Source: Raja brachyura (taxonomy: Eukaryota). Taken from it: DNA of 64,000 bases. Made by a program: the position numbers and the translations under genes. Location of the stretch: NCBI GenBank assembly GCA_963514005.1, contig OY740827.1:2852001-2916000 (forward strand). The letters are read 5' to 3'. Positions within the stretch are counted from its first letter, which is position 1, and every line of letters starts with the position of its first letter. This document shows, one piece after another, positions 21,186 through 60,846 of this stretch. The notes beneath the pieces are model-generated. The model ran no database searches. It worked only from the letters and a program-made list of their open reading frames with translations, and was not told the DNA's origin.

Positions 21186-21242
21186 TCATTTTGATCTGAG
21201 CTGGAGCTCGCTGTACAGATCCCGGTCACCGACATTCAGCTC
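21186..21242 (-). CDS. Siglec-like gene exon 10: [18 protein letters not shown]-stop (completes the ITAM)
   Basis: Strong acceptor tgtttctctcctcacag, phase 0; gives YQEL-x7-YSEL. Confidence 0.82.
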   Translation of the reverse strand, partial: ELNVGDRDLYSELQLRSK

Positions 21243-24200: not shown

Positions 24201-27200
24201 TTGATGATGCCTTATTGACAAACCTTATCCCTCCATCCGAGAAGTTGATAATGTTATTGGGAAGTTACTAACAGCATTCCCTGAGTAGAATTTGGTCAAC
24301 TGCATTACCAAAATCTCAAAAAGGGTAAAAACACAAGCTAATACAGCGAGCAGGCCATTTTGTTGGGCCCATGCAATTGCCAAAGGAAGCTTTATTAAAA
24401 TTGTGTTGATGGATTGAGAATGTTCCACAAGCTGTTAAAAACATTTTGGTTCAGCAGCCAGCAGTGATTTTGCAAGCTGATGCAAGTTCTCTCGGATGGG
24501 GTGCTATGGATAATGATACCAGCTGTGGGGGCAGATGGACTGTCCAAGAGGATGTATTTCTCCAAACATATGGTATAAATTATTTGGAGTTACTGGGAGC
24601 ATTTTATGGATTAAAAGCTTATTGTTCTACTATGAAGGATTTGCATGTCCAATTACAAGTAGACAATACCACAGCTGTGGCATATATCAATCACATGAGT
24701 GGAGTAAGATCATTATCATGTGTTCATCTGGGTAACCAGGTGTGGCATTGGTGTATTGGTAAGAATATTCGGGTTTCAGTTATTTATCTCCCAGGGGGAG
24801 ACAATATTGTGGCAGACATAAGATCACAAAAATTTTAAGACAATACAGAATGGATGTTAAATCCAAAAAAAATTCAAGAATATTGTCAGTCGGTTGGAGT
24901 ACCGGACATTGATCTGTTTGCATCTAGATTTAATCACCAATTGCCCAAATACGTGTCTTGGGAACACGATCCAGGGGCAGTAGTGGTGGATGTTTTCTCG
25001 CTACACTGGGGGAATACGTTCTTTTATGCCTTTCCCCCATTCTGTCTGATTGGGCAATGTCTCAAGAAAATAGCGCAAGACACTGCCAAGGGCATTTTGG
25101 TGGTGCCAAATTGGCCTACACAGTCATGGTTCCCGTTGATGCTTAAAATGATTATTGAACCATGTATGATGATTCCTAGTTGCAACAATTGTTGATACAA
25201 CCAGTGACAAAAGAAATTCATCCATTGCAGGATCATATAAATTTGTTAATCTGCAGCTTCTGACCAGACCATTGCAAGAGCTTGGACTGTCGGATAGGAC
25301 CATGGATGTTATAGCTGCAGCTTGGAGAAATAGCACTTAAAAACAATATATGTCGCATATAAAGAAATGGGAAGTCTTCTGTAGACAGTCAAAGATGTCT
25401 TATTATACTGCGAACATATCAAATGTATTGGAGTTCCTTGCTGGGTTGCATTTTGATGAGCACTTAAGTTATAGTGCCATTAATAGTGCTCGTAGTGCTT
25501 TGTCGTCCTATTTAGGACAAATTTCTGATCGAGATTCAATTGGGTCTCACCCATTAAATATCCCGGTTCATGAAAGGAATTTTAATAAAAATCCTCCCAA
25601 GCCCAGTGATACAGAAATTTGGGATGTTAGCATTGTTCTCACTTTGCTTAGGTAATGGACTCCAATTACTTCAATGTCTTTGCAAAGGTTAACATTCAAG
25701 GTAGTAATGTAATGGCATTAGATTCAGCTCAAAAAGTACAAACTTTGCAATTGTTACGGTTAGATTGCATGCATGTGGCTTCAGATAACATTGTGTTTTA
25801 TGTTTATGATCTGACCAAACACAGCAGACCAGGAAAAACTGGAGTCAAGGTAATTTTTAAAGCATATCCTGTCAATGAAACATTGTGGGTAGTTAAGCAT
25901 TTAACTAAATATATTGAAGTTAAGTTTTCATTGTACCATTTTATCATTGAACCACTGCTGACAAATTCATTCACTTGCACTTTGTGTGCAATGTGACGAA
26001 TAAAACTGATTGATTGATTGATTGATTGAAGTAATCAAAATCTCCGAGGTGCTGAGACAGCGTTACTGATAATGCACAAAAAACCACATACAAAAGTTGC
26101 AGTTCAAACCATTTCTAGATGGTTAGAACAGGTTTTGGATTTAGCAGGAGTGGACACTGATGTGTTTAAGTTTCACTCCACTAGGGCTGCAGCTTCGTCC
26201 GCTGCGAAGGTACAGGATGTACCACTCGATAAAATTTTAGAGGCCGCAGGGTGGTGTAAAGAAGAAACTTTTTCAAAGTTCTATGATAAACCTGTTGTCA
26301 CGGTGCCAGGATTTGGACACACAGTGTTGGGTTCGCTTTAAATGCTTGCTTTGTTTTATATTATCGATTTATTGTATCGATTTATATTATCATTTGATAT
26401 CATTATCACTTTTGTTGAAATATTTTCCCCTGGGATAGAATTGTTCTTTTTATGATTAAAAGACTTATTACATAAATTGAAACAATGTTTTAAAAATATT
26501 ATTTACTCACTACTGTATTGACTAAACAGAGTGTCGTATGGAATGAATCTACGACATAAAAAACACAGAGCTTTAAAATCTTCACGTAGTCACTCACGTG
26601 ACTCCGAAGCAAAATAGTAAGATTAAACAAGAACTTACCTGTTCGAAGTTTGATCTTTATTTTATGAGGAGTTACGATGAGGGATTACGTGCCCTCCGCT
26701 CCCAACCCTCATAATATAAATGATCATCTGGTAGTTCTAGTCTATGTTGAGCCTTACTATCTTACTCCGGCTATTGGTTCTGTGTTTTTCATGCCGCTGC
26801 TTTGAAGTATGCCGATCAAGCGCCAGGTGGGCTTCGTCACGTAATCCCTCATCGTAACTCCTCATAAAATAAAGATCAAACTTCGAACAGGTAAGTTCTC
26901 GTTTAATCTTACTATTCTGCTCCCATCACTTATGAACATCGTGGGTCAGTCTCAGTGGGCAAAGTGGGATATGATGGAGAGATTCAGTGTGTTGAGGGGG
27001 GTCAGTATCCTGGGGGACAGGGGGTGGGGACGGTGATGTGGGTTTGGTGGACAGGAGTGGGGGGGGGGGGGGTGGTTGGTGGCCGACACTGGGAGGGGGA
27101 GAGTTTAGTTCAGTTTAGCTTATTGTCACAAGTACCGATGTATGGTGAAAAGCTTTTATTGCATGTTAACCAGTCAGCGGAAAGACAACACATGATTACA

Positions 27201-30200
27201 ATCGAGCCATTTACGGTGTAGAGACGCATGATAAGGGAATAACATTTAGTGCAAGGTGAAGCCAGCAAAGATAGTCCGAGGGGCACCAATGAGGTAGATA
27301 TTAGTTCAGGACCGCTCTCTGGTTGTGGAAGGATGGTTCAGTTGCCTGACAGCAGCTGGGAAGAAACTGTCCCTGAATCTGGAAGTGTGTGTTTCTACAC
27401 TTTTGTACCTCTTGCCTGATGGGAGAGGGGAGAAGAGGGAGTGGCCGGGGTACGACTGGTGCTTGATGATGCTGCTGGCGTTGCCGAGGCAGCGTGAGGT
27501 GTAAATGGCCGAGGTCATGGAGTTAGTATCCATGGGGCAGTGCTAGTGTGGGGGGGACAACAAGGAGACAAACGCTGATCTGCCTCTTTGCCACAACAGT
27601 ACCAACCTGATAGGGGGACTCCACTGGCCCATCTTCAACTTTCTGTTCCATCCGCTGCATCACAGAACTTTCTGGAAGACATAATTTCATTCAGACCACA
27701 CACTTTCCTCTTTGCCTCAGTCTCCTTTCTCTCATTCTTCGGAAATTCCTTCATTCATCCTTCTCTCTCCCTCTCACTCTTCCACATTCCTTTCGTCATT
27801 CATTCTCCGTACACATCTTACTCATTCAACCTCTTTCACACCAGCACGCCTCAATCTCTCCCTCCCTCCCTCCCTTCCTCACACATTCATTCTCTGACAC
27901 ACACCTTCCATTTCCCTATTTCTCCTCCCTTCCATATCTTTTGAGGATAAGGGGGAAATCCTTTAGGACCGAGATGAGAAGGACTTTTTTCACACAGAGA
28001 GTGGTAGGTCACTGGAACTCTGCCACAGAGGGTAGTTGAGGCCAGTTCATTGGCTATATTTAAGAGGGAGTTAGATGTGGCCCTTGTGGCTAAGGGGATC
28101 AGAGGGTATGGAGAGAAGGCAGGTACGGGATACTGAGTTGGATGATCAGCCATGATCATATTGAATGGCGGTGCAGGCTCGAAGGGCTGAATGGCCTACT
28201 CCTGCACCTAATTTCTATGTCTATGTTTCTATCTTTTCCCATTCATTAGTACTGGTGTCAGTGGTTATGGGGAGAAGGCAGGAGAATGGGGTTAGGAGGA
28301 AGAGATAGATTAGCCATGATCGAATGGCGGAGTAAATTTGATGGGCCGAATGGCCTAATACTCCTCCTATCACATGACTTCACCCTTTCTCCCACTGTAA
28401 ATGTCCTCGGATCATCTCTCTGGGAAGGGGTTTGGCTCGACTGAAACTGTGGAGGGGTAATTCTTGTGACCTATTGATACATGGAAGTGAATGGGAAAAG
28501 GATGGGGTGTATGAGGAGTGTAGGGAGTGGGGAGAGAGTGGGAGGGAGTTTCAGTCTATTGGGTGTGTGGGGAGAGGGAGCGAATGGGGAGGGAATTGTG
28601 GTGTATTAGGAGTGTGGAGGGAGGGAATGAGGAAGGGTTTGGGTTGATGGGGTGTGTGGGCAGAGGGAGAGGTTGTGGAGCTGTGGGTGGTGACAGGGAA
28701 TGGGGAGGAGGATGGGTCCATTGGGAGTGTGGACAGTGAGAGGGAATGGGATTGTGAGCGGCACTGAGATTGTTCCCAGATTATGTAGTTTTTGCTGATG
28801 TAGATGAGGTATAAATATCAGCTCAAGGATGCTTGGAAAATCTGCCCTGCCTCTCTTTTCAAACACGGTGGTGGCAGTGGGGCGGGTGGGGATGTTATGT
28901 TTTGGAGAGGGCCCTGTTTTAAGGTTGATGCTGTGTGTACCTCCTCTCCCTCTCCCTCTCTCTACCTCGCCCCTCTCCCTCTCTCTATCTCGCCCCTCTC
29001 CCTCTCCCTCTCTCTCCCTCTCCCTCGTGAATAAATGGCAGTGAAGACATTCAGACAATTTCCAGATCATCTCGCACCTCGCTTGTTGCGACAACGCGCT
29101 GCCCAGAAGATTGCGGTGGTGATGACGGAGACAGTAACGACACCAAGGACGACGGCAAGAACGATCACGGCCACGACGTATTTCCCAGTCCTGTCCCGGC
29201 CATTTACTGAGGGGTGGAGAGAGGAGTCAGTGAGAGCCCAGACACGACAACTTAACCCCAAGTCCAGCCCAGACAGAGCAGCGAAAGAGATTCTGCAGCA
29301 CGCACCACTGCATTGGATTACACTGGAATTACAGAACGGAAACAGGCCATTCGACCCATCTTGTCCTGCTGACCCTACTTTCCTCATCTATCAGAATGTT
29401 CTACCTCCCTCTAAATCTACTTCTACTGTGGCCTCAACGCGCCCTGAGGGCAGTGAGGTCCACCACTCACCTCTCTCTGAGCAAAGGCTTGTCCCTCTGA
29501 GGTCCCAACGGCTGTTTATTGCTGATGGCCTCCACTCCTGCTCTTCCCCACAGCCATTCCATCCTCACCCTTCATTGTTTCAGTCGTGGAGTAGTACAGC
29601 ACGATAGAGGCCCTTCGGCCCAACCCGTCCAATCCAACCAAGACGTCCGATCTAGGTCCCATTTGCCCATATTTGGCCCATATCTCTCTGAACCTCTCCT
29701 ATCCATGTATCTGTCCAAATGTTGTTATTGTACCAACTTCAACTACACCCTCTGGCAGTTCGTTCCCAAATACCAACCACACTTTGTGTGAAAAAAGTTG
29801 CCCCTCAGTTTCCTATTAAATCATTCCCCTCTGCCTTCTAGTTCTCGATTACCAAATCCTTGGGAAAAAAACAACTGTGCATTCACCCTATCTATTCCTC
29901 TCATGATTATATTCACCACGAAAAGATCACCCACCCCTCAGTCTCCTGTGCTCCAGAATAAAGTTTGTGTCTGCCCAACCTCTCCCTATTGCTCAATCCC
30001 GCAGGTCCTAGTAGCATCTTTGAAAATCTGCTCTGCACTCTTTCCAGCTTAATAGCATATTTTCTGTAGCAGGGTGACCAAAACTGAACTGTCAAAACGC
30101 AAAGTGGAGGAACAGCATCTCATATTTTACTTGGGTAGCTTACAACCCAGTGGTATGAATATTGATGTCTCTAATTTCAAATAGCCCCGGCATTCCCTCT

Positions 30201-33200
30201 TGCTCTATCCCTCCCCCACCCAAGTCTCACCAGCTTCTCGTTTTCACCCAACAAACAGCTAACAATGGCCTGTTTCCTCTATCCTTACTTTTTTGCATAT
30301 CTTTCATTCATTTTTATCTCTTTTTTTTGTCAATTTTTTAAAATTAGAAGTAACTACATAATAAAAAGTAATTTGTTCATCGTAGACATAATAAAAAGCA
30401 TTTTGTTCATTGTAGATATACATTATCAATATTATTTTCATTAACAATTGCATAGTAATTGTACTTCTATATATTTTTTCCTGTTTTTATAAAGATAGAA
30501 ATTAATAGAGAGAGAGTAAACAAAAAAGAGGAGGAAAAGTTGAGAAAGAATGGAGTGTTCAATAGATTATGCATTGTTGGAGATGTAATTGTTCTTTATT
30601 TCTTTACAGGTATGTCATCCACTACATCTCTCGTCTCCCTTTCCCCTGACTCTCAGTCTGAAGAAGGGATTCGACCCAAAATGTCACCTATTCCTTTTCT
30701 CCAGAGATGCTGCCTGTCCCGCTGAGTTACTCCAGATTTTTGTGTCTATCTACAAATACTCCAAGTGTGGCCTCACCAATGTACAGCGACGCCCCCCCCC
30801 CCCCCCCCCCCCCCTCAGTTGTTGGTCCCAGAACAGCTCATATCTTCACCAACCACTATATTTCCTTGCTCCCCTCTCCCCCTTCACCCGGCTTAACCCC
30901 CAGCACGTCAGTGCAGACGGCAATGGCTCTGTTGTAAATGGTGTCTTCAAGGAGGTGGCGATGGAAGACAGAGAGACTCCCATTTCATCAGCACCTTTCA
31001 CCATCCCAAAGTTCTGCCCAACCAAGTTGTCCATTTGTCGACTGGTCACAATTGTAATGTGGGAAATGTGGCAGCCAGTCTGAGCGCAGCAAGTCCCACA
31101 AAAACCAATGTGACAATGACCCAGATCATCTGTTGAAGTCACATGAGATGAGGGGTAAGCATTGTCCCCAGGACACTGGGATGAACTCCCTGCACTGGCC
31201 GTGGGGTCTTTAACCCACTTGAGTGAGGAGGTGGACCTTCATCAGATTGATCTGGAGAGGTCGAGGGAGGGAATTCCCGGGTTTGGGAGTCTGGACAGTG
31301 AGCGGAAATTTGGCATTTCTCCAAAAGTAACCAATCTACATCTTTCCTTGCAAGAATAAAAGTGAAACACATCTACAATAAAGTGATATATATGTATAAG
31401 CACGTTACTAGATGCTGACTGATTAATAATGTAACCAAAACGCTAATAGCGCATACAGGGAAGTACTGATGGTTCAAGCCTAATGCCCGTATCTAAGGGG
31501 CGGCCTACAACCCCGTCCCGCATGCGTACGGTACAGATCCGCATCTCCTCCTGCCAGTACCGCCATTCAATATGATCATGGCTGCTCAACCAAAATCAGT
31601 ACTCCGGTCATGCTTTCTCCCCATCTCCCTTAATTTTGTTAACTGTAAGAGCTATATCACACTCTCTCTTGAAACATCATTGAAAGGGCGCACCACCAGA
31701 CCCAGGAACAGCTTCTTCCCCTCTGTGATCGGCCACTGCACGGTCCTTCCATAAAGCTTGGGTACTGTCTGATTCACGTGGTCTCCAATGTAGACATTGG
31801 ACTTTGTCTGTGGAATTATTGCGATACAATGCAGAGAACTATATTCTGCGCTCTGCATCTTCCCCTTTGCTCTGCCTGTTGTCTTTGTTTGGCTTGATTG
31901 CATTTAGATATAGTATTTGATTGGATAGCATCCAAACCAGAGCGTCTCACTGTACCTTGGTACACATGGCAATAATAAACCGAAGCCTGAACTTCACATG
32001 AATGGATAGCGTTCCCACAGAAGCGTTCTCACCTTCCACCCACAGATACACCTTGAACATGGCTTTCCTCCCCCTCCCTCTCCCAGAGAGATGTCCTCAC
32101 CTTCCATCAACACCGTCAACATGGCTTCCCCGTGGCGGTTTCGGACTAAGCACAAGGCCGTCACGTCCTCCCCTTCCTCACCCCTTCTCAGGGTCAGGGT
32201 GCCATTCACCAGATGCCCGCCTGCCACCTGCCAGGTGTGGAAACGGCCGTGGGATTGGTTCCCGCTGAGATGGGCGAGGGGGAGGCGCCAGGTTAGCTCT
32301 CCGGGTGGGTTGCTCCTGGCTGCACAAACGCAGGTGACACTCTCAAGTATCCGAGAGCATCCTGATTCCTGAGAAATCTCCGGCGCATCTGGAGAGGGAG
32401 GAACAATACACAAGAGATGCTGTAGCAACAATACAACTGGGCGGCACGGTGGCACAGCGGTAGAGTTACTGCCTCACAGCGCCAGAGACCTGGGTTCAAT
32501 ACCGACTATGCGTGCTGTCTGTACAGATTTGTACATTATCCCCGTGACCTGTGTGGACTTTCTCTGAGAACTTCAGTTTCCTCACGCACTTCAAAGACGT
32601 GCGGTTTTGTAGGTTAATTGGCTTTGGTATAAGTGTAAATTGTCCCTAGTGCGTATATGATAGTGCTAATGTGCAGGAATCGCTGGTCGGTGGACCAAAG
32701 GGCCTGTTTCTGTGCTCTATCTGTAAACGACACAAAAACTAAGCTCACTGTAAGAAAACAACGTAACCCTGAACCTATCAGCAGCATCGGACTATCTCAG
32801 CACTATCTCCCCAAATCTTCCCATCTCCACCCCTTTCCCCTTTCCTCAGAGCTCTTTCCCTCCGCAACTCCCTGAACAACTCATCCCTTCCCACCCATTC
32901 ACCCCCTCCCTGGGTACCTTCCCCTGCAACCGCAGGTGACGCAACAACAGTCCCTATAACTCCCTCCTCGATTTGTCCCAGGACCCCGTCAATCTTTTCA
33001 AATGAGGCAAAGGTTCACTTACCCCTCTTCCAACCTAATCTACTGTATCCACTGTTCCAGGTGTGGAATCCTGTATATTGGCGAAACCAAGCGTAGGCTT
33101 GACGATCGTTTCGCTGAACACCTCTGCTCAGTCTGCCTAAACCTACCTGATCTCCCGGTTGCTAAACACTTTAACTCCCCCTCCCATTCCCATACTGACC

Positions 33201-48200: not shown

Positions 48201-50986
48201 TATCTGAGGAAGGATGTGCTGGCTCTGGAGAGGGTCCAGAGGAGGTTTACAAGAATTATTCCAGGAATGAGTGGGATAGCATATGATGAGCGCTTGACAG
48301 CACTGGGCTTGTGCTCGCTGGAATTTAGATGGTGGGGGGTCATTGAAATTTACAGAATAATTAAAGGCACGTGCATGTTGAAAGGTTGTTTCAACTTGTG
48401 GGAGAGTCTAGCACCATAGCTTCCGAAATAAATGCCCCTCTTTTAGAAATTAGGTGAGAAGGAGCTTCTTTAGTCAGAGGGCAGTTAATCTGTGGAACTC
48501 ATTGCCACAGAGGGTTTTGGAGGCCAAGTTATTGGATATTTTTAAGGCAGAGATAAACAAGTTCTTGATTAGAACAATTGTCAAGGGTTATGGGGAGAAT
48601 GCAGGAAATGGCATTAGGAGGCAGAGAGCCATGATTGCATTGCGGAGTAGACTCGATGGGCCGAATGGCCAAATTCTATTCCTATAACCTGTGATATTCT
48701 AAACTTGAACCACCTGTTTGAAGTCTAAAGGCAATCCTATATCACTTTCTCATTTGGAACAAGATACTATAGGTACAAGGTACAAAGTGCTGCATTAACG
48801 CAGCGGGTCAGGCAGCATCTCTGGAAAAAAGAAATAGGTGGCGTTTCGCGTCAAGACCCTTCTTCAGACTGAGTCGAAGAGCGGGAAATACGAGATATCG
48901 ACGGCACAAATGAAAGATATGTTAAAGCAACGATGATCAATAAAGATGTCGAGCCCACAATGGTCCATAACGAGTAGGTGATAACGAGTTATACAGGAAA
49001 TGAAACTCAAGAGGACAACAGTAAATAAACGATCCTTGTCACCTACCTTGTTCTCCAGGATTGGAGGCATGAGCTACAGGGAGATGTTGGGGCAGGCTGG
49101 GACTCTATTCCTTGGAGGGCAGGCGGATGAGGGGTGATCTTATAGAGGTGATCAAAATTATTGGTAGGAATTAATCGGGTGGACGCAAAAAGTCTCTTGC
49201 CCAGAGCAGGGGAATCGAGGACCAGAGGACTTAGGTTTAAGAGGAGAGGAGAGAAGATTTAATGGAGCCTGAGGGGTAACATTTTTCCACACAAAGGGTG
49301 GTGGGTGTATGGAACAAGCTGCCGGAGGAGGTAGTTGAGGTTGGAGGGATATCGGCCAAACGCAGGCATGTGGGACTAGTGTAGATGGGGCATGTTGGCT
49401 GGTTGACTCTATCTACACCTCACGCTGCCTTGGTAAGGCAGGCAGCATAATCAAGAACGGGTCGTTCCCCAGCCACTCCCTCTTCTCCCCTCTCCCATTG
49501 GGCAAGAGGTACAGAAGTGTGAAAATGCACACCTCCAGATTCAGGGACAGTTTCTTTCCAGCTGTTATCAGGCAACTGAACCATCCTACCGCAACCAGAG
49601 CGCAGTCCTGAATTACTATTGTGCTATCTTTGAAGGGACTTTACTGGATTTTTCTTGCACTAAACGTGATTCCCTTTTCTTGTATGTGTACACAGTGGGT
49701 GACACTATTGTAATCAAGTAGACACAAAAAGCTGCAGCAACTCAGCGGGACAGGCAGCATCTCTGGAGATAAGGAATGGGTGACGTTTCGGTTCGAGACC
49801 TTCTTCAGACTATAGGGAGAGGTTGAGCACGCTAGGTTTAAGATGAGAGGGGAGAAGATTTAATAGATCCTGAGGAGTAACTTTTTAGTGGTGGGTACAT
49901 GGAACGGAGCTGCCGGAGGAGGGAGTTGAGGCTGGGACCATTGCAACGTTTAAAAAATAGTTGAACAGGTAACATGGATAAGACTTGTTTGGATGGATAT
50001 GGGCTGAAGTAGGGCAGGTGGGACTAGTGTAGATGGGGCTCGTTGGCTGGTGTGGGCAAGTTGGGCCGAAGGGCCTGTTTCCGCGCTGCAAGACTCTATG
50101 ACTCCAAAGATGTTGCCTGCCCCACTGAGTTGCTCCAGCACTTTGTGTTTTAAGCAACGTGAGGAGTGACGATACATAGAGGGAGGCTTTGAGGGTTTCT
50201 GGGTAGAAAGCCCAATATGATCCAACAATGTCAGGCAGAGGTCAGACAGGATACATACAGGTGGGGAACACAAAAGATTGTAGATGTGGGCAGCACGGTG
50301 GCGTAGTGGGTAGAGCTGCTGCCTCACAGTGCCAGAGACCCGGGTTCCATCCCGGGTTCGTGCCTGTCTGTACGGAGTTTGCAGGTTCTCCCCGTGACCT
50401 ACGTGGGGTTTCTCAGAGATCTTGAGGATGTGTGTGTGTTTGAGTGAGCGCGTGTGCGTGAGAGAGAGCGTGTGGTTGTGCGATTGTATGTGAGAGAATG
50501 TGTGCGTGCGTACGTGTGTGTGTGCGTGCGCGTGTGTGCGTGTGTGCGTGCGTGTGTGTGTGCGTGGGAGGGTGAATGTGTGTGCGTGATAGATGTGTGT
50601 GAGAGGGAGAACGCGTGTGTGTGTGTGATGGTTTGTGAGAGAATGTGTGTGTGTTTGAGTGCGTGTGTGTGTGCGAGAGAGGGAGATTGTGTGGTTGTGC
50701 GATTGTATGTGAGAGAATTTGTGTGTGTTTGAGTGAATGCGTGTGTGCGTGTGTATGTGTGTGTGTGTGCGAGGGAGGGTGAATGTGTGTGCGTGATAGA
50801 GGGTGTGATAGAGGGTGCGACAGAGAGCATATGTGTGTGATGGTTTGTGAGAGAATGTGTGTGTGTGAGTGGGTGTGTGTGGGAGTGAGTGAGTGTGAGT
50901 GAGATAAGGAGGGCGTGCGTGTGTGTGTGATAGATGGTGTTTATGTGTGAGAGCGAGAATGTGTGTGTGATGGTTTGTGAGAGAAT

Positions 50987-51020
<34 letters not shown>

Positions 51021-54000
51021 TGGTGTTCATGTGTGCGACAGAGAGAATGTGTGTGTGAGAGAGAAGGAGAGTGAGTGTGTGAGAGCGTATGCGATGAATT
51101 CCAGTATCTCTCATGGGCCAATAATCCATCTGCCTTTATAGACAGTCAGATGACAGTGTGTGTCCACTCACATTCTACAGTGAGGGTCACATCCCTCTCT
51201 GCTGTCCCATGTTCATTCTCCGCCACACACTGATAGACCCCGGCGTCCTGCCGTGTCAGCTGAGGGAACTCCATCCACAGCTCGTTGCTGGAACGTGTTG
51301 TGTTCAATGCGACACCGAGATGTCTCCACGTCAGGTTAGACGCTGGGAAACTCTGGACGGAGCAGAGGATCGCTGCAGAGTTTCCTTCCTTTACACTGAC
51401 CCAGGAATTGTTGACTTTGTCGGGGGAAGTGGTTGAGAGATTCTGGGGAGCGTCTGCAAACAGATAAAATTCAGCAACTAGTTTTGTGGCACTTTCGGTG
51501 ATCCTTGGATTGTAAAAGACTTTAGAGATACACTGCGGAAATAGGTCCTTCAGCCCACCGAGTCCGCGCCGACCATCGAACACGCGTTCACGCACTAGTT
51601 CTATGTTTAGGGAAATGAGAGATATAGATGATGGTGTAGAGAGATATAGAACAAAGAATGAAAGATATGCAAAATAGTAACGATGATAAAGGAAACAGGC
51701 TATTGTTCGCTGTTTGTTGGGTGAGAACGAGACGCTGTACGACTTGGGTGGGGGTGGGATGAAGAGAGAGGGAATGCAGGGTCCTGCCCAATATATGAGA
51801 TCCTGTTCCTCCAATTTGCATTTAGCCTCACTCTAACAGTGCAGGACATAAAGGTCAGTGTGGGAATGGGAAGGAGAATTAAAGTGTTTAGCAACCGGGA
51901 GATCAGGTAAGTCCTACATCTCTCTACATCATCGTCTATATCTCTCGTTCCCCTTTCCCGTGACTTTCGCTCTGAAGAACGCTCTCGACCCGAAACATCA
52001 CCCATTCCTTCTCTCCAGAGATGCTGCCTGTCCCGCTGAGTTACTCCAGCTTTTGGTGTTGATTTGATTAGTACGGGTGTCAGAGGTTATGGGGAGAAGG
52101 CAGTGCAATGGGGTTATGAGGGAGAGATAGATCAGCCATGATTGAATGGTGAAATAGACTTGATGGGCCGAATGGCCTAATTCTGCTCCTTCCACTTATG
52201 ACCTTATGTACCAGCACTGCTGATAGATTATTGCTGTTCCTGCACAATAAACGATCTCCGTACTTACATTGCACAGTCATTGTGAGGATCTGCTCCGATG
52301 AGACAGTTGGGTATCTGACTCTGCAGGTGAGGTTTTGCCCGTGATGTTTGAGCACTGGGGTCAGGGACAGAACAGAAGTATATGTCAGAGTGTCTCCCCG
52401 CTGAGTTACGCTGTGTGAGGCTGACGTTGGTTCATCAGCGGGGGTGACCCAGGTTAAGGTGGGTGCCGTTCCATCACACGTGGTGTTGAAGATGCAGGTC
52501 ACGGTCACAGGCTGACCTGCCACCATTTCAGCAGGGAATATCGTGGGGTTATCTGTGAAATCTAACACACACAGAAACAGATACTGTTAGTTAAATATCA
52601 CGAGATACATCGGTTCACATCACAATCCCAGTCCCACATGAGGAAGGATGTTTTTACAAGGTACAGAAGTGTGAAAACGCACACCTCCAGATTATCAAGG
52701 ACCAGTCTCATCCCCGGCCACTCCCTCTTCTCCCCTCTTCCACCGGGCAAGAGGTACAGAAGTGTGAAACTGCACACCTCCAGATTCAGGGACAGTTTCT
52801 TCCCAGCTGTTATCAGGCAACTGAACCATTCTACCACAACCAGAGAGCGGTCTTGAACTACTATCTACCTCATTGGTGACCTTCAGACTATCCCTGATCA
52901 GACTATGCTGGCTTAACCTTGCACTAAACGTTATTCCCTTATCATGCAGCTGTACACTGTAAACGGCTCGATTGTAATCATGTATTGTCTTTCCGCTGAC
53001 TGGATAGCACGCAACAAAAGCTTTGCACTGTACCTCGGGACATGTGACAATAAAATTAACTAACTAAACTAAACTAAACTAGGATGATCCCTGAACAAGG
53101 AGGTACAATGGTCAGGGGAGGTTGAAAAGGTCGGGGATCAGGAATGTCATGATGACCTGTGATCGGGAAGATGGGGACAGAGTTCTCCACTAAGGGCAGT
53201 AAGGATAAGACAGTCATTGTTTAGTTTAGTTCAGGCTGTGTGAAGTGTAGATGGAGTCGATATTAGGAGCATATATGGGCAATGAAAACCTGGTAATAAC
53301 AGTGCAAAAACTGGAGGTGTCACGATGATCCAGAAATGAACCAGAAGGATCCTGATGCTGTGGTGTGTGTGTGAATAGGGAATGTGTACAGTCCAAAGTC
53401 CGATCAAGGATAGTCCGAGGTTCACCAGTGAGGCTGATGGTAGTTCAGCACTGCTCTCTGGTTGTGGTAGGATGGTTCAGTTGCCTGATAACTGCTGGGA
53501 AGAAACTGTTGAGTGAATGAGTGAATTATCCAGAGCACTTACCAGTAACACTGAGCCGTGTTACAGGGTGGTAGTTGAAACGATTTCCCCCTCCAAAATC
53601 AACTCTGAAAAAATAAGGACCTGCATCTTGCAGCGTGACGTTGTCTATAACCAGGGAACAGTCGTTGTCTCTCAGGATTCCTGACAGCCGGGTCCGATGC
53701 TGAAACTTTGTTGATTCTAGACTGGGATCCACGGAGTGGAAGGCCACAGAATCTTCTTTGTTCTTCTCACTGTTATACCAGATTCCAGTCCGTGGTTTAT
53801 TGTTCAGATGCGACGAGTGCCTGTAGTGACACGGAATCCGTGCACACAAACCATTCTGCGCTGTCACATCTGGTGGAGTGTCCGCACTCCACTGTCCCGA
53901 CACCACGGCTGAGGAGAGAAGGACCAATCTTTAGCAGTGAACACCCTGTCAGTTCACTGGACTCACTTTCCCCACCTTTTATCCTGCGCTGTGGACCTGG

Positions 54001-57000
54001 TGTGTACAGAGCGTAGAAGAGCGGCATGGTGGTGTAGGGGTAGAGCCTTCCTCCTCACCGCCCCTCCCACAGTGTGTCACTCCCTCCTCACCGCCCCTCC
54101 CACAGTGCATCACTCCCTCACACAATGTGTCACTCCCTCCTCACCGCCCCTCCCACAGTGCATCACTCCCTCCCATAGTGCATCACTCCCTCCTCACCAC
54201 CCCTCCCACAGTGTGTCACTCCCTCCTCACCGCCCCTCCCACAGTGCGTCACTCCCTCCTCACTGCCCCTCCCACAGTGCGTCACTCCCTCCTCACCGCC
54301 CCTCCCACAGTGTGTCACTCCCTCCTCACCGCCCCTCCCACAGTGCGTCACTCCCTCCTCACCGCCCCTCCCACAGTGTGTCACTCCCTCCTCACAAACC
54401 CTCCCACAGTGTGTCACTCCCTCCCACAGTTCATCACTCCCTCCTCACCGCCCCTCCCACAGTGCATCACCCCCTCACACAGTGTGTCACTCCCTCCTCA
54501 CCGCCCCTCCCACAGTGTGTCACTCCCTCCTCACCACCCCTCCCACAGTGCATCACTCCCTCCCACAGTGCATCACTCCCTCCTCACCACCCCTCCCACA
54601 GTGTATCACTCCCTCCTGACCGCCCCTCCCACAGTGCATCACTCCCTCCTCACCGCCCCTCCCACAGTGTGTTACTCCCTCCTCACCGCCCCTCCCACAG
54701 TGTGTCACTCCCTCCTCATTGCCCCTCCCACAGTGTGTCACTTCCTCCACACAGCCCCTCCCAGAGTGTGTCACTCCCTCCTCATTGCCCCTCCCACAGT
54801 GTGCCACTTCCTCCTCACCACCCCTCCCAAAGTGTGTCACTCCCTCCTCACCGCCCCTCCCACAGTGTGTCACTCCCTCCTCATTGCCCCTCCCAGAGTA
54901 TGTCACTCCCGCCTCATTGCCCCTCCCACAGTGTGTCACTTCCTCCTCATCGCCCCTCCCACAGTGTGTCACTCCCTCCTCATTGCCCCTCCCACATTGT
55001 GCCACTTCCTCCTCACCGCCCCTCCCAAAGTGTGTCACTCCCTCCTCACCGCCCCTCCCACATTGTGTCACTCCCTCCTCACCGCCCCTCCCACAGTGTC
55101 ACTCCCTCCTCACCACCCCTCCCACATTGTGTCACTCCCTCCTCACAACCCCTCCACAGTGTGTCCTCCCTCACTGCCCCTCCCACAGTGCCACCCTCCT
55201 CACCGCCCCTCCCACAGTGCATCACTCCCTCACACAGTGTTTCACTCCCTCCTCACCGCCCCTCCCACGGTGTGTCACTACCTCCTCACCGCCCCTCCCA
55301 CAGTGTGCACTCCCTCCTCACCGCCCCTCCCACAGTGCATCACTCCCTCCCATAGTGCATCACTCCCTCCTCACCACCCCTCCCACAGTGTGTCACTCCC
55401 TCCTCACCGCCCCTCCCACAGTGCGTCACTCCCTCCTCACTGCCCCTCCCACAGTGCGTCACTCCCTCCTCACCGCCCCTCCCACAGTGTGTCACTCCCT
55501 CCTCACCGCCCCTCCCACAGTGGGTCACTCCCTCCTCACCGCCCCTCCCACAGTGCGTCACTCCCTCCTCACCGCCCCTCCCACAGTGTGTCACTCCCTC
55601 CCACAGTTCATCACTCCCTCCTCACCGCCCCTCCCACAGTGCATCACTCCCTCACACAGTGTTTCACTCCCTCCTCACCGCCCCTCCCACGGTGTGTCAC
55701 TACCTCCTCACCGCCCCTCCCACAGTGTGCACTCCCTCCTCACCGCCCCTCCCACAGTGCATCACTCCCTCCCATAGTGCATCACTCCCTCCTCACCACC
55801 CCTCCCACAGTGTGTCACTCCCTCCTCACCGCCCCTCCCACAGTGCGTCACTCCCTCCTCACTGCCCCTCCCACAGTGCGTCACTCCCTCCTCACCGCCC
55901 CTCCCACAGTGTGTCACTCCCTCCTCACCGCCCCTCCCACAGTGTGTCACTCCCTCCTCACCACCCCTCCCACAGTGCATCACTCCCTCCCACAGTGCAT
56001 CACTCCCTCCTCACCACCCCTCCCACAGTGTATCACTCCCTCCTGACCGCCCCTCCCACAGTGCATCACTCCCTCCTCACCGCCCCTCCCACAGTGTGTT
56101 ACTCCCTCCTCACCGCCCCTCCCACAGTGTGTCACTCCCTCCTCATTGCCCCTCCCACAGTGTGTCACTTCCTCCACACAGCCCCTCCCAGAGTGTGTCA
56201 CTCCCTCCTCATTGCCCCTCCCACAGTGCGCCACTTCCTCCTCACCACCCCTCCCAAAGTGTGTCACTCCCTCCTCACCGCCCCTCCCACAGTGTGTCAC
56301 TCCCTCCTCATTGCCCCTCCCACAGTATGTCACTCCCTCCTCATTGCCCCTCCCACAGTGTGTCACTTCCTCCTCACCGCCCCTCCCACAGTGTGTCACT
56401 CCCTCCTCATTGCCCCTCCCACAGTGTGCCACTTCCTCCTCACCGCCCCTCCCAAAGTGTGTCACTCCCTCCTCACCGCCCCTCCCACATTGTGTCACTC
56501 CCTCCTCACCGCCCCTCCCACAGTGTGTCACTCCCTCCTCACCACCCCTCCCACAGTGTCACTCCCTCCTCACAACCCCTCCACAGTGTGTCCTCCCTCA
56601 CTGCCCCTCCCACAGTGTCACCCTCCTCACCGCCTCTCCCACAGTGTGTCACTCCCTCCCGCAGTGCATCACTCCCTCCTCACCGCCCCTCCCACAGTGC
56701 ATCACTCCCTCACACAGTGTTTCACTCCCTCCTCACCGCCCCTCCCACGGTGTGTCACTCCCTCCTTCCGCCCCTCCCACAGTGCATCACTCCCTCCCAC
56801 AGTGCATCACTCCCTCCTCACCACCCCTCCCACAGTGCATCACTCCCTCCTCACCGCCCCTCCCACAGTGCATCACTCCCTCACACAGTGTGTCACTCCC
56901 TGCTCACCGCCCCTCCCAAAGTGTGTCACTCCCTGCTCACCGCCCCTCCCACAGTGTGTCACTCCCTCCTCATTGCCCCTCCCACAGTATGTCACTCCCG

Positions 57001-60000
57001 CCTCATTGCCCCTCCCACAGTGTGTCACTTCCTCCTCATCGCCCCTCCCACAGTGTGTCACTCCCTCCTCATTGCCCCTCCCACAGTGTGCCACTTCCTC
57101 CTCACCGCCCCTCCCAAAGTGTGTCACTCCCTCCTCACCGCCCCTCCCACATTGTGTCACTCCCTCCTCACCGCCCCTCCCACAGTGTGTCACTCCCTCC
57201 TCACCACCCCTCCCACAGTGTGTCACTCCCTCCTCACAACCCCTCCACAGTGTGTCCTCCCTCACTGCCCCTCCCACAGTGTCACCCTCCTCACCGCCCC
57301 TCCCAGTGTGTCACTCCCTCCCACAGTGCATCACTCCCTCCTCACCGCCCCTCCCGCAGTGCATCACTCCCTCACACAGTGTTTCACTCCCTCCTCACCG
57401 CCCCTCCCACGGTGTGCCACTCCCTACTCACCGCCCCTCCCACAGTGTGCACTCCCTCCTGACCGCCCCTCCCACAGTGCATCACTCCCTCCCATAGTGC
57501 ATCACTCCCTCCTCACCACCCCTCCCACAGTGTGTCACTCCCTCCTCACCGCCCCTCCCACAGTGTGTCACTCCCTCCTCACTGCCCCTCCCACAGTGCG
57601 TCACTCCCTCCTCACCGCCCCTCCCACAGTGTGTCACTCCCTCCTCACCGCCCCTCCCACAGTGCGTCACTCCCTCCTCACCGCCCCTCCCACAGTGCGT
57701 CACTCCCTCCTCACTGCCCCTCCCACAGTGTGTCACTCCCACCCACAGTTCATCACTCCCTCCTCACCGCCCCTCCCACAGTGCATCTCCCCCTCACACA
57801 GTGTGTCACTCCCTCCTCACCGCCCCTCCCACAGTGTGTCACTCCCTCCTCACCACCCCTCCCACAGTGCATCACTCCCTCCCACAGTGCATCACTCCCT
57901 CCTCACCACCCCTCCCACAGTGTATCACTCCCTCCTGACCGCCCCTCCCACAGTGCATCACTCCCTCCTCACCGCCCCTCGCACAGTGTGTTACTCCCTC
58001 CTCACCGCCCCTCACACAGTGTGTCACTCCCTCCTCATTGCCCCTCCCACAGTGTGTCACTTCCTCCACACCGCCCCTCCCAGAGTGTGTCACTCCCTCC
58101 TCATTGCCCCTCCCACAGTGCCACTTCCTCCTCACCACCCCTCCCAAAGTGTGTCACTCCCTCCTCACCGCCCCTCCCACAGTGTGTCACTCCCTCCTCA
58201 TTGCCCCTCCCACAGTATGTCACTCCCTCCTCATTGCCCCTCCCACAGTGTGTCACTTTCTCCTCACCGCCCCTCCCACAGTGTGTCACTCCCTCCTCAT
58301 TGCCCCTCCCACAGTGTGCCACTTCCTCCTCACCGCCCCTCCCACAGTGTGTCACTCCCTCCTCACCACCCCTCCCACAGTGTGTCACTCCCTCCTCACA
58401 ACCGCTCCCACAGTGTGTCCTCCCTCACTGCCCCTCCCACAGTGTCACCCTCCTCACCGCCCCTCCCACAGTGTGTCACTCCCTCCTACAGTGCATCACT
58501 CCCTCCTCACCGCCCCTCCCACAGTGCATCACTCCCTCACACTGTGTTTCACTCCCTCCTCATCGCCCCTCCCACGGTGTGTCACTCCCTCCTCGCCGCC
58601 CCTCCCACAGTGCATCACTCCCTCCCACAGTGCATCACTCCCTCCTCACCACCCCTCCCACAGTGCATCACTCCCTCCTCACCGCCCCTCCCACAGTGCA
58701 TCACTCCCTCACAGTGTGTCACTCCCTGCTCACCGCCCCTCCCAAAGTGTGTCACTCCCTGCTCACCGCCCCTCCCACAGTGTGTCACTCCCTCCTCACC
58801 GCCCCTCCCACAGTGTGTTACTCCCTCCTCACCGCCCCTCCCACAGTACGTCACTCCCTCCTCACCGCCCCTCCCAGTGTGTCACTCCATCCTCATTGCT
58901 CCTCCCACAGTGTGCCACTTCCTCCTCACCGCCCCTCCCAAAGTGTGTCACTCCCTACTCACCACCCCTCCCACAGTGTGTCACTCCCTCCTCACTGCCC
59001 CTCCCACAGTGCGCCCCTCCCACAGTGTGTCACTCCCTCCTCACAACCCCTCCCACAGTGTGTCCTCCCTCACCGCCCCTCCCACAGTGTGTCACTCCCT
59101 CCTCATTGCCCCTCCCACAGTGTGTCACTTCCTCCTCACCCCCCTCCCACAGTGTGTCACTCCCTCCTCATTGCCCCACCCACAGTGTGTCACTTCCTCC
59201 TCACCGCCCCTCCCACAGTGTGTCACTCCCTCCTCATTGCCCCTCCCACAGTGTGCCACTTCCTCCTCACCGCCCCTCCCAAAGTGTGTCACTCCCTCCT
59301 CACCGCCCCTCCCACAGTGTGTCACTCCCTCCTCACCGCCCCTCCCACGGTGTGTCACTCCCTCCTCACCGCCCCTCCCACAGTGTGTCACTCCCTCCTC
59401 ACCGTCCCTCCTACAGTGCGTTTCTCCCTCATCACCGCTCCTCCCACAGTGTGTCACTGCCTCCTCACAGCCCCCATACAGTGTGTCACTCCCTCCTCAC
59501 CGCCCGTCCCACAGTGCATCACTGCTTGTGACCAATAGAGTGTCCCTTATAGTCAGGGTCCGGAGCCACTCCACCTAAGGTCCGTAGGGGGAGGAGTGAC
59601 TCTGCTGTCAGCGACCGAAGGTCTGGTGACGGGATCTAGCGAGTTGGCAGGGCCGAAGATGGCCTGGTTGGGTTGCTCCGTCCGCCAGTCAGGGCGCCAG
59701 GCAGAAGAGGGCTTTGCCCGAGCCAGTTGGTTGCATCATTAACAGGGTTACATCCGTGCCTGGGTGGTGTTAGAGAGGGACATGGTTATATAGTGGTTTA
59801 TTAGTGTATCTGTAGCATAGTTGTTTGGAAATGTAGTGTCTGAATAATTTGGTGATTTTGTAATATTGTGGAGGGTGGGTCACCACGGTTTGGGTTTTTT
59901 GGGGTTTTGTATCGTGATCGTAATTGAATACATTATTTTTGATGCATAAAATCAGTGCGGCGCTCACTCCTTTGCTACAGTACATTCCATCTGCCACTTC

Positions 60001-60846
60001 TCTGGCCACTCTCCCAACGTGTCCAAGTCGGCCTGCAGAGTTCCTGCTTTCTCTACACTACCTGCCCTTCACCTGTTTCCCTATCATCTGCAAACCTGGC
60101 CACACATCTGTCAAAAACCTTTGTCTAAATCTTTAATATACAACGTGAAAAGGAGTGGTGTGTAGGAAGGTACATGCTGGTTTAAACTGAAGATAGACAC
60201 AAAAATCTGGAGTAACTCAGTGGGACAGGCAGCATCTCTGGAGAGAAGGAATGGGTGATGTTTCGGGTCGAGACCCTTCCTCAGACTGTAAGTCACGGGA
60301 AAGGGAAACGAGAGATATAGACGATGATGTGGAGAGATACAGAACAATGGATGAAAGATATGCAAAAAAGTAATGATGATAAAGAAAACAAGCCATTGTT
60401 AGCTGTTTGTTCAGTGAGAACGAGAAGCTGGTGCGGCTTGGGTGGGGGAGGGATGGAGAGAAAGGGAATGCAGGATTTACTTGAAGTGAGAGAAATCAAT
60501 ATTCATACCACTGGGTTGTAAGCTGTCCAAGCAAAATATGAGATGCTGTTCCTCAAATTTGCATTTGGGCTCACTCTGACATCGGAGGAGAACGAGGACA
60601 AACAGATCAGTGTGGGAATGGGAAGGGGAATTAAAGTGTTTGGCAACCGGGAGATCAGGTAGGTCCAGGCGGACTGAGCGAAGGTGTTCAGCGAAAGGAT
60701 CGTTGCGGCCCCAGCACCGACCCCTGCGGAACTCCGCTAGTCACTGGCAGCCAACCAGTAAAACCCTCCTCACCCGTAAACACTTGTGAGTTGCTGCTGA
60801 TGGTACCTTGGAGAAGGGAGAGGAGGAAGAACGATCTCCCGATCAT
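21186..60846 (-). CDS. Spliced gene: Siglec/MAG-like Ig-superfamily receptor (signal peptide, V-set, 5 C2-type Ig, TM, DAP12-like ITAM tail); 10 coding exons, predicted 694 aa
   Basis: Exons 60846-60807, 53908-53543, 52561-52268, 51453-51172, 44854-44573, 37755-37474, 32388-32101, 29206-29078, 27671-27607 and 21242-21186 have canonical AG/GT boundaries and compatible phases (1,1,1,1,1,1,1,1,0). They sum to 2085 nt = 695 codons with no internal stop. Confidence 0.85.
21290..21600. repeat. G-rich ~41-bp tandem repeat next to the last-exon acceptor
   Basis: Repeated ggtgtaggggccagaggggaggggattacggagacaggg units. Confidence 0.8.
23640..24838 (+). pseudogene. DIRS RT/RNase H (frameshifted)
   Basis: [39 protein letters not shown] and RNase H motifs, with several stops and frameshifts. 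Confidence 0.85.
24854..25195 (+). pseudogene. DIRS DNA N6-adenine methyltransferase-like domain
   Basis: [19 protein letters not shown]...YAFPPF...[14 protein letters not shown]. Confidence 0.85.
25300..26341 (+). pseudogene. DIRS tyrosine recombinase (disrupted)
   Basis: [27 protein letters not shown]...FHSTRAAA...AAGW...TFSKFY; frameshifts plus a ~105-bp insertion at ~25921-26024. Confidence 0.85.
27607..27671 (-). CDS. Siglec-like gene exon 9: cytoplasmic [22 protein letters not shown] (first ITAM Tyr)
   Basis: Acceptor tgtcttccag, donor CAG|gttggt, phase 1-0. Not in the ORF track; found by manual reading. Confidence 0.8.
27940..28380 (+). mobile_element. CR1 3' ends (two tandem fragments)
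   Basis: Near-identical to the 3' end of 14881-16840; TTTCTATG tail. Confidence 0.85.
29078..29206 (-). CDS. Siglec-like gene exon 8: transmembrane segment
   Basis: [43 protein letters not shown]: hydrophobic span followed by a basic stop-transfer stretch. Acceptor ctccacccctcag; donor G|gtgcga is weaker than consensus. Confidence 0.85.
30950..31230 (-). mobile_element. Old Deu-domain SINE (SacSINE1/AmnSINE1-related) remnant
   Basis: tgtaatgtgggaaatgtggcagcca..gcgcagcaagtcccacaaa..caatgtgacaatgaccca matches the Deu central domain as I recall it. Confidence 0.6.
32101..32388 (-). CDS. Siglec-like gene exon 7: membrane-proximal MAG-domain-5-type Ig domain
   Basis: [12 protein letters not shown]....[17 protein letters not shown]...[10 protein letters not shown]; the S-x-C...C-x-C...SNP pattern resembles MAG domain 5; ctctccag|...G|gtgagg. 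Confidence 0.9.
32790..33670 (+). mobile_element. Penelope-like element 3' fragment: GIY-YIG endonuclease plus terminal repeat
   Basis: [32 protein letters not shown]; downstream terminal repeat with a degenerate hammerhead motif at ~33543-33573. Confidence 0.85.
33800..35480. mobile_element. Cluster of CR1 3' fragments
   Basis: ORF2 C-terminal peptides in ORFs 34165-34356, 34700-34900 and 35099-35464. Confidence 0.8.
37474..37755 (-). CDS. Siglec-like gene exon 6: C2/I-type Ig domain (copy 3 of 3)
   Basis: 282-bp open exon nearly identical to the other two; atttag|...|gtgagt. Confidence 0.9.
37905..40190 (-). mobile_element. Decayed CR1 LINE (~2.3 kb)
   Basis: Successive ORF2 fragments (39833-40093, 39354-39923, 39048-39344, 38552-38917, 38278-38559) with RT motifs and the CR1 3' stem-loop. 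Confidence 0.92.
41580..43533 (-). mobile_element. Non-autonomous Helitron (copy 3) with a 30-bp tandem array
   Basis: Minus-strand 5' TCTATACTATTACTAAAA; 3' hairpin GGACCcaacaGGTCC then CTTAGTCCAG|T; array ctcacggctggtggactcacagttcactca at ~42320-43230; empty site in the paralogous segment at ~36797. Confidence 0.8.
44573..44854 (-). CDS. Siglec-like gene exon 5: C2/I-type Ig domain (copy 2 of 3)
   Basis: 282-bp open exon nearly identical to 51172-51453; ctttag|...|gtgagt. Confidence 0.9.
46131..46165 (+). ncRNA. Minimal hammerhead ribozyme motif (Penelope terminal-repeat type)
   Basis: CTGAAGA-aGGGccttgaCCC-GAAAC-GTC: CUGANGA core, stem II, GAAA, then a GUC triplet. Confidence 0.6.
46232..48700 (+). 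mobile_element. Nested decayed CR1 LINEs (a 3' fragment at ~46880-47550 inside an older copy)
   Basis: DKSPGLDG and NYRTVS, then a complete 3' end, after which [18 protein letters not shown] resume. Confidence 0.85.
50428..51090. repeat. Compound (GT)n/(GA)n microsatellite
   Basis: Interspersed TG and GA runs. Confidence 0.95.
51172..51453 (-). CDS. Siglec-like gene exon 4: C2/I-type Ig domain (copy 1 of 3)
   Basis: YAPQNLS...[23 protein letters not shown]...[14 protein letters not shown]; 282 bp, tttgcag|...|gtgagt. Confidence 0.92.
52268..52561 (-). CDS. Siglec-like gene exon 3: first C2-set Ig domain
   Basis: DFTDNPTI...[20 protein letters not shown]...[17 protein letters not shown] has the extra Cys typical of Siglec domain 2; AG/GT boundaries, phase 1-1. 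Confidence 0.92.
52655..53080 (+). mobile_element. Rex1/Babar-type LINE 3' end
   Basis: [36 protein letters not shown] followed by AATAAA and an (AACTA)n tail. Related copies at 27100-27510 (minus), 49405-49715 and 35580-35885. Confidence 0.7.
53543..53908 (-). CDS. Siglec-like gene exon 2: sialic-acid-binding V-set Ig domain
   Basis: QW...GLCARIPC...W...[30 protein letters not shown]: Siglec Cys pattern plus the F-strand essential Arg (YFFR). Acceptor ttctctcctcag, donor G|gtaagt. Confidence 0.93.
54047..59525. repeat. 5.5-kb C-rich minisatellite, 33-bp unit TGTGTCACTCCCTCCTCACCGCCCCTCCCACAG with 20-bp sub-units
   Basis: Direct tandem repetition; the 11-aa periodicity of the spurious ORFs ([11 protein letters not shown]) confirms the 33-bp unit. 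Confidence 0.97.
60807..60846 (-). CDS. Siglec-like gene coding exon 1: signal peptide [13 protein letters not shown]
   Basis: ATG at 60846; phase-1 donor CAAG|gtacc; upstream acceptor ctttctcttgcag opens the exon at 60887. Joins the V exon as [21 protein letters not shown], a plausible cleavable leader. Confidence 0.75.

Follow-up and report, generated by a model that had tools for sequence, protein, structure and literature searches.

The 64,000-nt stretch of Raja brachyura DNA analysed here (contig OY740827.1 of assembly GCA_963514005.1, positions 2,852,001 to 2,916,000, forward strand; hereafter the window) carries on its minus strand, from 60846 to 21186, a series of exons that can with good confidence be read as one ten-exon gene. 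The predicted product is a Siglec-family membrane receptor of type I whose cytoplasmic tail contains an activation motif of the immunoreceptor tyrosine-based kind (ITAM), and the gene would belong to the activating arm of this family in batoids. All coordinates are positions in the window, and P-numbers denote retrieved relatives. The ten exons, with immunoglobulin (Ig) domains and the transmembrane (TM) segment assigned, and the polyadenylation signal are as follows.

60807-60846, minus strand: leader exon with the ATG at 60846, encoding a hydrophobic signal peptide; GT donor, phase-1 end
53543-53908, minus strand: V-set Ig exon of Siglec type; Pfam V-set 6.9e-13, cysteines in LCARIPC...DCSLVI, arginine in YFFRVD
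52268-52561, minus strand: C2-set Ig exon with an extra Cys in NTTCDG; Pfam C2-set_2 9.9e-10, at most 89% identity to skate models
51172-51453, minus strand: I-set exon 1 of 3; Pfam I-set 6.1e-12, phase-1 splice sites, 92% identity to the Leucoraja model P0233
44573-44854, minus strand: I-set exon 2 of 3, an internal duplicate; Pfam I-set 8.7e-12
37474-37755, minus strand: I-set exon 3 of 3, an internal duplicate; Pfam I-set 4.4e-12
32101-32388, minus strand: membrane-proximal Ig-like exon; weak Pfam Ig matches, 73-74% identity to the equivalent domain of P0193, P0240 and P0198
29078-29206, minus strand: TM exon of 129 nt; AG before and GT after, phase 1 in and out, 61-71% identity to the TM exons of ITAM-tailed Rhinoraja longicauda models only
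27607-27671, minus strand: cytoplasmic exon A of 65 nt; AG at 27673-27672 and GT at 27606-27605, entered in phase 1 and ending in phase 0 after ...VESPYQ
21186-21242, minus strand: cytoplasmic exon B with the second half of the ITAM and the stop codon; long polypyrimidine tract and AG, 60-73% identity to R. longicauda and Pristis pectinata C-termini
21012-21017, minus strand: polyadenylation signal AATAAA, 168 nt past the stop codon

The exon lengths total 2085 nt, corresponding to 694 codons and a stop, and the encoded layout consists of a signal peptide, a V-set, a C2-set and three I-set domains of recent duplication, a membrane-proximal Ig domain, an uncharged TM segment and a tail of ~45 residues that ends in one ITAM. 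All exon junctions are phase-compatible, and the exons upstream of the TM exon are all of phase 1 with AG/GT sites, which were read directly. Homology searches were made exon by exon rather than with an assembled spliced protein. N-termini of homologs matched the leader exon by tblastn (e.g. 11/13 residues, 84.6%, with P0005, P0185 and P0238), the acceptor of the C2-set exon was set at 52561 since homologs read D-FTDxP, and the membrane-proximal Ig exon was homologous to domain 3 of P0013 from Pristis. Models of A. radiata, L. erinacea and R. longicauda showed the best identities to the window exons, 84-92%.

Exons A and B are two small exons that the open reading frame (ORF) track had missed and that the original prediction joined in frame behind the TM exon; their sites, phases and sequences turned out to be as described there. 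Exon A shows the acceptor context tgtcttccAG and the donor CAG^GTTGGT (^ marks a splice site), and it is 77-87% identical to the residues before the ITAM in P0208, P0209, P0212, P0240 and P0193. The hydrophobic core encoded by the exon at 29206-29078 contains no D, E, K or R, as had been proposed for this segment, and direct reading also agreed with the earlier statement that read-through of the TM-exon donor leads into a frame ending in GAR and a stop codon. Splicing of the ITAM exons in R. brachyura is predicted from genomic sequence.

The ectodomain shows the marks of a Siglec. The best PDB sequence matches of the V exon were MAG (9e-14), sialoadhesin and CD33, followed by Siglec-15/5/8/10/7, and non-Siglec Ig domains began only at 3.6e-05. 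In the phmmer alignment to 5lf5 and 5lfr, the V-set motif GPYFFRVD aligned with GKYYFRGD of MAG, including the F-strand Arg, established as the essential residue that binds the sialic-acid carboxylate. LCARIPC and DCSLVI of the V exon aligned with the MAG cysteines, and the C2 exon contains three Cys, among them the extra one in NTTCDG, as expected for the inter-domain disulfide of Siglecs; a Cys pairing between the V-set and domain 2 is accordingly predicted. The features that define the Siglec family at the sequence level are present, with sialic-acid binding itself as a predicted property. The V-set, the essential Arg and the three-cysteine pattern are common to the window gene, MAG (Siglec-4) and the CD33-related Siglecs. 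These relatives have no classical ITAM, whereas the window gene has no tail exon with an immunoreceptor tyrosine-based inhibitory motif (ITIM) or switch motif (ITSM), and the long tail with an ITIM and an ITIM-like motif or ITSM that marks the inhibitory CD33-related Siglecs was not found in it.

When exons A and B are read in phase, the tail contains ExxYxxL-x7-YxxL with the junction ESPYQ^EL, a phase-0 intron lying between YQ and EL. The classical ITAM has the consensus [D/E/N]xxYxx[L/I]-x7-Yxx[L/I] and an exon boundary inside the first tyrosine module (PMC4536121), and the tail agrees with the published description in both respects; the full YxxL-x7-YxxL motif assigned to this tail by the original prediction was recovered. 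The bare motif occurred four times without splicing in the six-frame translation of the window and 5.0 +/- 2.1 times in shuffles. A motif this frequent by chance carries little of the argument, and the weight of the finding rests on homology.

Tblastn with 274 relatives, including the ITIM tails of P0214, P0234, P0251 and P0269, gave no ITIM-type tail exon in the window, and on this result the idea that the gene has a second, ITIM-bearing tail exon as an alternative was rejected. The earlier claim that the tail is free of separate inhibitory motifs holds in so far as the window has no ITIM/ITSM exon; however, SPYQEL, which forms the first module, is also compatible with the loose ITIM pattern [S/I/V/L]xYxx[I/V/L], as is TESPYQEL of human DAP12 (printed in PMC10265101). 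Because the first module fits SxYxxL, as in DAP12, an inhibitory behaviour at low avidity of the kind termed ITAMi is conceivable for this tail.

The same architecture was found in gene models of two other batoids. A representative search with the V exon yielded 884 relatives, among them P0013 (XP_051901316, "myelin-associated glycoprotein-like") of Pristis pectinata, which ends …VESLYQELRAGNRDLYSELKPSYN after an uncharged TM segment. Searches with P0013 and then P0209 led to further ITAM-tailed models, namely a second one from P. pectinata (P0157) and at least nine full models from R. longicauda (P0208, P0209, P0212, P0240, P0264, P0266, P0268, P0270 and P0271), and the ends of the R. longicauda models almost equal the window TM exon followed by exons A and B. 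The motif, its spacing of 7 residues and both tyrosines are conserved between skates and sawfish. Among the retrieved proteins, the TM, A and B exons of the window matched only ITAM-type models (61-71%, 77-87% and 60-73%, respectively), and the window Ig exons matched ITAM-, ITIM- and short-tailed models alike. The R. longicauda ITAM models lie on at least nine different scaffolds and the two P. pectinata models on one; the number of scaffolds implies that the tail exons were duplicated many times together with receptor genes.

The predicted batoid proteins (XP_078251090, XP_078251517, XP_078251627, XP_078251460 and others from R. longicauda; XP_051901316 and XP_051901315 from P. pectinata) share with the window gene the leader, V-set, C2 and I-set domains, the uncharged type of TM segment and the two-part tail ending in RDLYS[D/E]L. 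They differ from it in having 2-5 Ig domains instead of six, and their identity of 60-87% to the window exons indicates a different species or paralog. No functional or published account of these automatic predictions came to light. In several ITAM-model loci, isoforms X1 and X2 carry an identical tail. Several isoforms in the NCBI pipeline usually mean transcript support, which these models may have. The architecture itself is already public in the automatic annotation of two batoids under uninformative names (Siglec-13, MAG-like or CD33-like), and the locus represents one arm of a paired ITAM/ITIM family rather than an isolated chimera.

Two R. longicauda models depart from the common tail at the exon A donor. 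P0265, a partial model, stops exactly at …ESPYQ, and P0193 uses a donor 27 nt further on. The corresponding stretch of the window, 27580-27606, reads VGTVVAKRQ in frame and is coding in P0193, where the insertion destroys the first YxxL module; the window position equivalent to this downstream donor has no GT.

The pairing of tails is clearest in R. longicauda, where P0212 (ITAM) and P0269 (ITIM; …VYANLRDL…VEYAELWF) are 93% identical over 423 residues, a stretch comprising the leader, V, C2 and two I-set domains, and then diverge completely. In sawfish, P0013 (ITAM) and P0151 (ITSM-like, …TEYAEIRF) fall in one 90% cluster. On this sequence evidence the ITAM- and ITIM-tailed members of batoids are regarded as paired activating and inhibitory receptors, and the window gene as the likely activating partner of near-identical inhibitory receptors.

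Tails were surveyed in 144 elasmobranch models with species labelled by hand, the sample being the best 120 of 170 matches together with cluster members. Within this sample, only R. longicauda (9 models) and P. pectinata (2) had ITAM tails, and ITIM tails were present in most of the sampled species, sharks and rays included. Short-tailed members of sharks (Scyliorhinus, Carcharodon) carry an Arg inside the TM segment (…ILGIRAVIF…), as seen in P0220, P0228, P0006, P0201, P0205 and P0246. In the models sampled, the activating arm of sharks thus apparently follows an adaptor-dependent Arg-in-TM design, in contrast to the ITAM in cis of batoids. A V-set tree of 133 rows and 121 columns, which is weakly resolved, gathered the skate sequences in a starred clade holding all tail types; tail type was not monophyletic, and the ITAM label required at least three changes. 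The window V domain grouped with A. radiata, L. erinacea and R. longicauda members of other tail types and not with the R. longicauda ITAM cluster. This placement, together with the non-monophyly of the tails, indicates that tails and ectodomains have recombined.

Several observations weigh against a receptor that is spliced to its ITAM exons. The supporting models are automatic gene predictions, the exon A donor is of moderate strength only, and exon B alone reached 19.6 bits with the Pfam ITAM model PF02189, below the cut-off of 22.2. This model of 20 residues has little power; among full-length relatives it gave 18.7 bits for P0013 and did not list P0209 and P0240 at E<=0.01. No sequencing run recorded as RNA contained the stretch, and four candidate runs, all from other species, gave on 26700-32600 interspersed-repeat matches (27882-28472 and 30640-30836) and no joint at a predicted exon boundary. 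A 607-nt contig of a related species (run X1, record 6), of depth 117 and 92% identical, aligns with 29134-29032 across the donor at 29078, P0198 of R. longicauda ends in the read-through frame, and Logan contigs of 1378-1550 nt (P0230, P0273, P0274) as well as the models P0232, P0233 and P0243 end directly after a closely related TM exon. The last three points favour a gene whose main or only product ends just past the membrane (…CRNKRGAR and a stop) by read-through of the donor or by intronic polyadenylation, with ITAM exons that are rare or relics and a receptor that is tail-less, signalling-dead or a decoy. For the window gene this is unlikely. The X1 contig comes from another species and may represent genomic DNA, unspliced or tail-less transcripts of a related gene, or a tail-less subfamily, whereas the window has CGA rather than a stop as its last TM codon, a GT at the donor, and two open ITAM exons that have consensus acceptors and an AATAAA nearby. 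The conservation of both tyrosine modules and of the 7-residue spacer between skates and sawfish further argues for selection on a translated tail. Tail-less products do exist in the family, and the skate subfamily of P0230/P0273/P0274, P0232, P0233 and P0243 ends …CR[NS]K at the point that corresponds to …CRNKR^G in the window. Such ends would arise if a stop replaced the final codon (CGA); this looks like repeated loss of the ITAM tail.

The joining of the tail to the receptor could also be an annotation artefact, with exons A and B as the final pair of exons in a small adaptor gene of its own downstream, an ortholog or paralog of TYROBP/DAP12. On human 19q13, TYROBP is linked to the Siglec genes MAG and CD22, which would suit such an arrangement; of this, PMC4536121 confirms only that DAP10, DAP12 and CD79a map there. 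The tail does resemble human DAP12 (ESPYQEL...YS[D/E]L; PMC10265101, PMC11335228), whose ITAM, like every classical ITAM, is divided between two exons with the boundary falling in the first tyrosine module (PMC4536121). However, no leader or acidic-TM (Asp) exon was found in six frames between the TM exon and exon A (1.4 kb, repeat-filled) or in the rest of the window; the six-frame inspection gave only repeat-derived hydrophobic stretches, and the candidate was rejected. Moreover, the phase-1 start of exon A complements the phase-1 donor of the TM exon, and the tail recurs behind the same type of TM exon on the R. longicauda and P. pectinata scaffolds mentioned above, which implies that it was duplicated together with the receptor. 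A separate adaptor gene is thus highly improbable, and the ten exons are preferably read as a single gene.

Whether the tail of this single gene descends from TYROBP is a distinct question. Human DAP12 has an ITAM of the ESPYQEL-x7-YS[D/E]L type (PMC10265101, PMC11335228, PMC7226588). The exact seven-residue run ESPYQEL, in which four positions are free of the ITAM consensus, is common to the window and human DAP12, and so is the YS-x-L module, with YSDLN found in R. longicauda tails and DAP12 alike. These likenesses speak for DAP12. Identities were counted by hand against the human motifs given in PMC7226588. Over the 15-residue core they amounted to 8/15 for DAP12, 8/15 for CD3-zeta ITAM1, 6/15 for zeta ITAM3 and 4/15 for FcR-gamma; with three flanking residues added, DAP12 rose to 11/18 as against 8/18 for zeta ITAM1, and the R. 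longicauda tail shared 13/19 with DAP12. The intron between YQ and EL had been offered as a pointer to DAP12 by the original prediction, and this argument falls away: a boundary between Yx and xL is the rule for all classical ITAMs (PMC4536121) and hence no DAP12 signature. Only the ESP flank and the YS[D/E]L module favour DAP12. PDB searches with the exon A and exon B pieces gave no match at E<=10, peptides this short saying nothing, and an Atlas search with the P0209 tail gave no usable match, its length being too short to be informative.

Capture of the last two exons of TYROBP is therefore a reasonable hypothesis, with about an even chance of being right on the sequence comparison. A competing origin, to which slightly less than an even chance is given, concerns the source of the tail only: a generic ITAM cassette on two exons, either of the zeta/FcR-gamma type or from an older receptor with an ITAM in cis, would have moved among immunoglobulin superfamily (IgSF) genes of cartilaginous fish, and the DAP12-like residues would reflect shared constraints of SH2 binding. 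The universal exon boundary (PMC4536121), the core that is equally close to CD3-zeta ITAM1 and DAP12 and the zeta-like spacer N-x-G-x-R (PMC7226588) fit this origin, as does the TM segment, which is not DAP12-like; the exact ESPYQEL run with its four non-consensus positions, the shared YSDLN and the lead of DAP12 over zeta ITAM1 once the flank is counted do not. Of the chimera of a Siglec/MAG-like receptor and an adaptor proposed for this locus, what stands is one Siglec/MAG-like gene with an uncharged TM segment and its own classical ITAM, while the derivation of the tail from TYROBP keeps the status of a hypothesis. A more detailed scenario is tentative and, taken as a whole, rather doubtful. 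In this scenario, a batoid Siglec gene captured the ITAM exons of neighbouring TYROBP and became a single-chain activating receptor resembling a chimeric antigen receptor, which replaced the adaptor-dependent Arg-in-TM arm that sharks still use; exon shuffling or gene conversion then carried the cassette of TM and ITAM exons into several ectodomain lineages, with ITIM partners held at ~93% ectodomain identity.

With its own classical ITAM and an uncharged TM segment, the receptor should be able to signal on its own, no adaptor being needed. Clustering would be brought about by a ligand that is multivalent and probably sialylated, Src-family kinases would phosphorylate both ITAM tyrosines, and the tandem SH2 domains of Syk/ZAP-70 would presumably dock directly on the receptor, leading to cell activation without an adaptor of DAP12/FcR-gamma type. 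An ITIM-tailed partner recognizing the same ligand may counterbalance this activation. The sequence of kinase phosphorylation, Syk/ZAP-70 docking and activation has been described for ITAM adaptors (PMC4810170).

Compared with known systems, the window gene resembles the mammalian activating Siglecs (Siglec-14, -15, -16 and -H) in coupling a Siglec ectodomain to a DAP12-type ITAM, and the pairing of Siglec-5 and Siglec-14 with near-identical ectodomains resembles that of P0212 and P0269. The established mammalian design has a short tail and a TM Lys/Arg that recruits DAP12 as a separate adaptor, whereas in the window gene the TM segment is uncharged and the ITAM lies in the same chain; neither a TM Lys/Arg nor a motif-free short tail was found in it. 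Single-chain IgSF receptors with an ITAM or ITAM-like motif of their own likewise combine an Ig ectodomain, an uncharged TM segment and an ITAM in cis, and they are often the activating member of a pair. Human CEACAM3, with its inhibitory partner CEACAM1, and the CEACAMs of Xenopus are of this kind (PMC5112662). Fc-gamma-RIIA, teleost NILT1 and hagfish NICIR are further such receptors. Several single-chain receptors of other Ig families have non-canonical motifs, in contrast to the window gene with its classical consensus and exon structure. DAP12/TYROBP shares with the window gene an ITAM that spans the two terminal exons, with their boundary in the first tyrosine module (PMC4536121), and the likeness is confined to the last ~18 residues of the window tail. 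DAP12-type adaptors carry a negatively charged TM residue (PMC4536121), and DAP12 forms a small dimer, linked by a disulfide, that has a TM Asp and a very short ectodomain lacking Ig domains. None of these features is present in the window gene, which has no D/E in the TM core and six in-phase Ig exons upstream.

In the open-access library searched for ITAM-bearing Siglecs of sharks, skates and teleosts, no description was found of a Siglec with a classical ITAM in cis, and none of the apparent contrast between shark Arg-in-TM and batoid cis-ITAM members. To our knowledge, every Siglec characterised so far works in one of two ways, inhibition through ITIMs or activation in trans through DAP12. 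A cis-ITAM Siglec would thus be a third signalling design for the family, and it would offer a clean example from nature of paired receptors that gain their activating arm by capturing exons instead of using a charged TM segment. With charged-TM members in sharks and cis-ITAM members in skates and sawfish among the models sampled, the switch would be datable and the source exons traceable in principle. The names Siglec-13, MAG-like and CD33-like given to the batoid models hide a likely activating function of a whole subfamily.

The three I-set exons of the window gene are 90-93% identical to one another in nucleotide sequence, and because the identity is only of this order they are considered real internal duplications and not assembly copies. 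The duplicates (37388-37898 against 44487-44997, and 51172-51453) are spaced by ~6.6-7.1 kb, and their amino-acid identity of 85-90% lies below the nucleotide identity, a hint that selection on the I-set domains is relaxed or diversifying. Directly downstream of I-set exon 1, a CA/TG-rich tract of low complexity (50399-51121) contains a spurious ORF of 240 residues with THTHS repeats.

Intron 1, between the leader and the V exon, is for the most part filled by a 5.5-kb minisatellite (54050-59523) with ~160 copies of a 33-bp unit, CCCTCCCACAGTGT.TCACTCCCTCCTCACCGC. It has 60-64% GC and a strong skew of C over G, and it gives rise to very large spurious ORFs on either strand. Its translation is matched by the C-terminus of the public model P0018, an indication that in some elasmobranch the annotation treats a related repeat as coding. 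The intron separating I-set exons 2 and 3 holds a second minisatellite (42320-43060), with 25 copies of a 30-bp unit and 83% matches. In the last intron, a run of plus-strand ORFs at 24446-26341 ends with one that has a weak Phage_integrase (tyrosine recombinase) match (7.4e-4, below cut-off), and a retroelement of DIRS/Ngaro type may have inserted between the two ITAM exons. Reverse-transcriptase ORFs of the long interspersed nuclear element (LINE) type (RVT_1, 2.5e-28) lie at 14978-16791 on the minus strand, and LINE-related fragments recur within the gene and in its surroundings, at ~38.3-40.1 kb, 46.4-47.3 kb and 47.6-48.7 kb.

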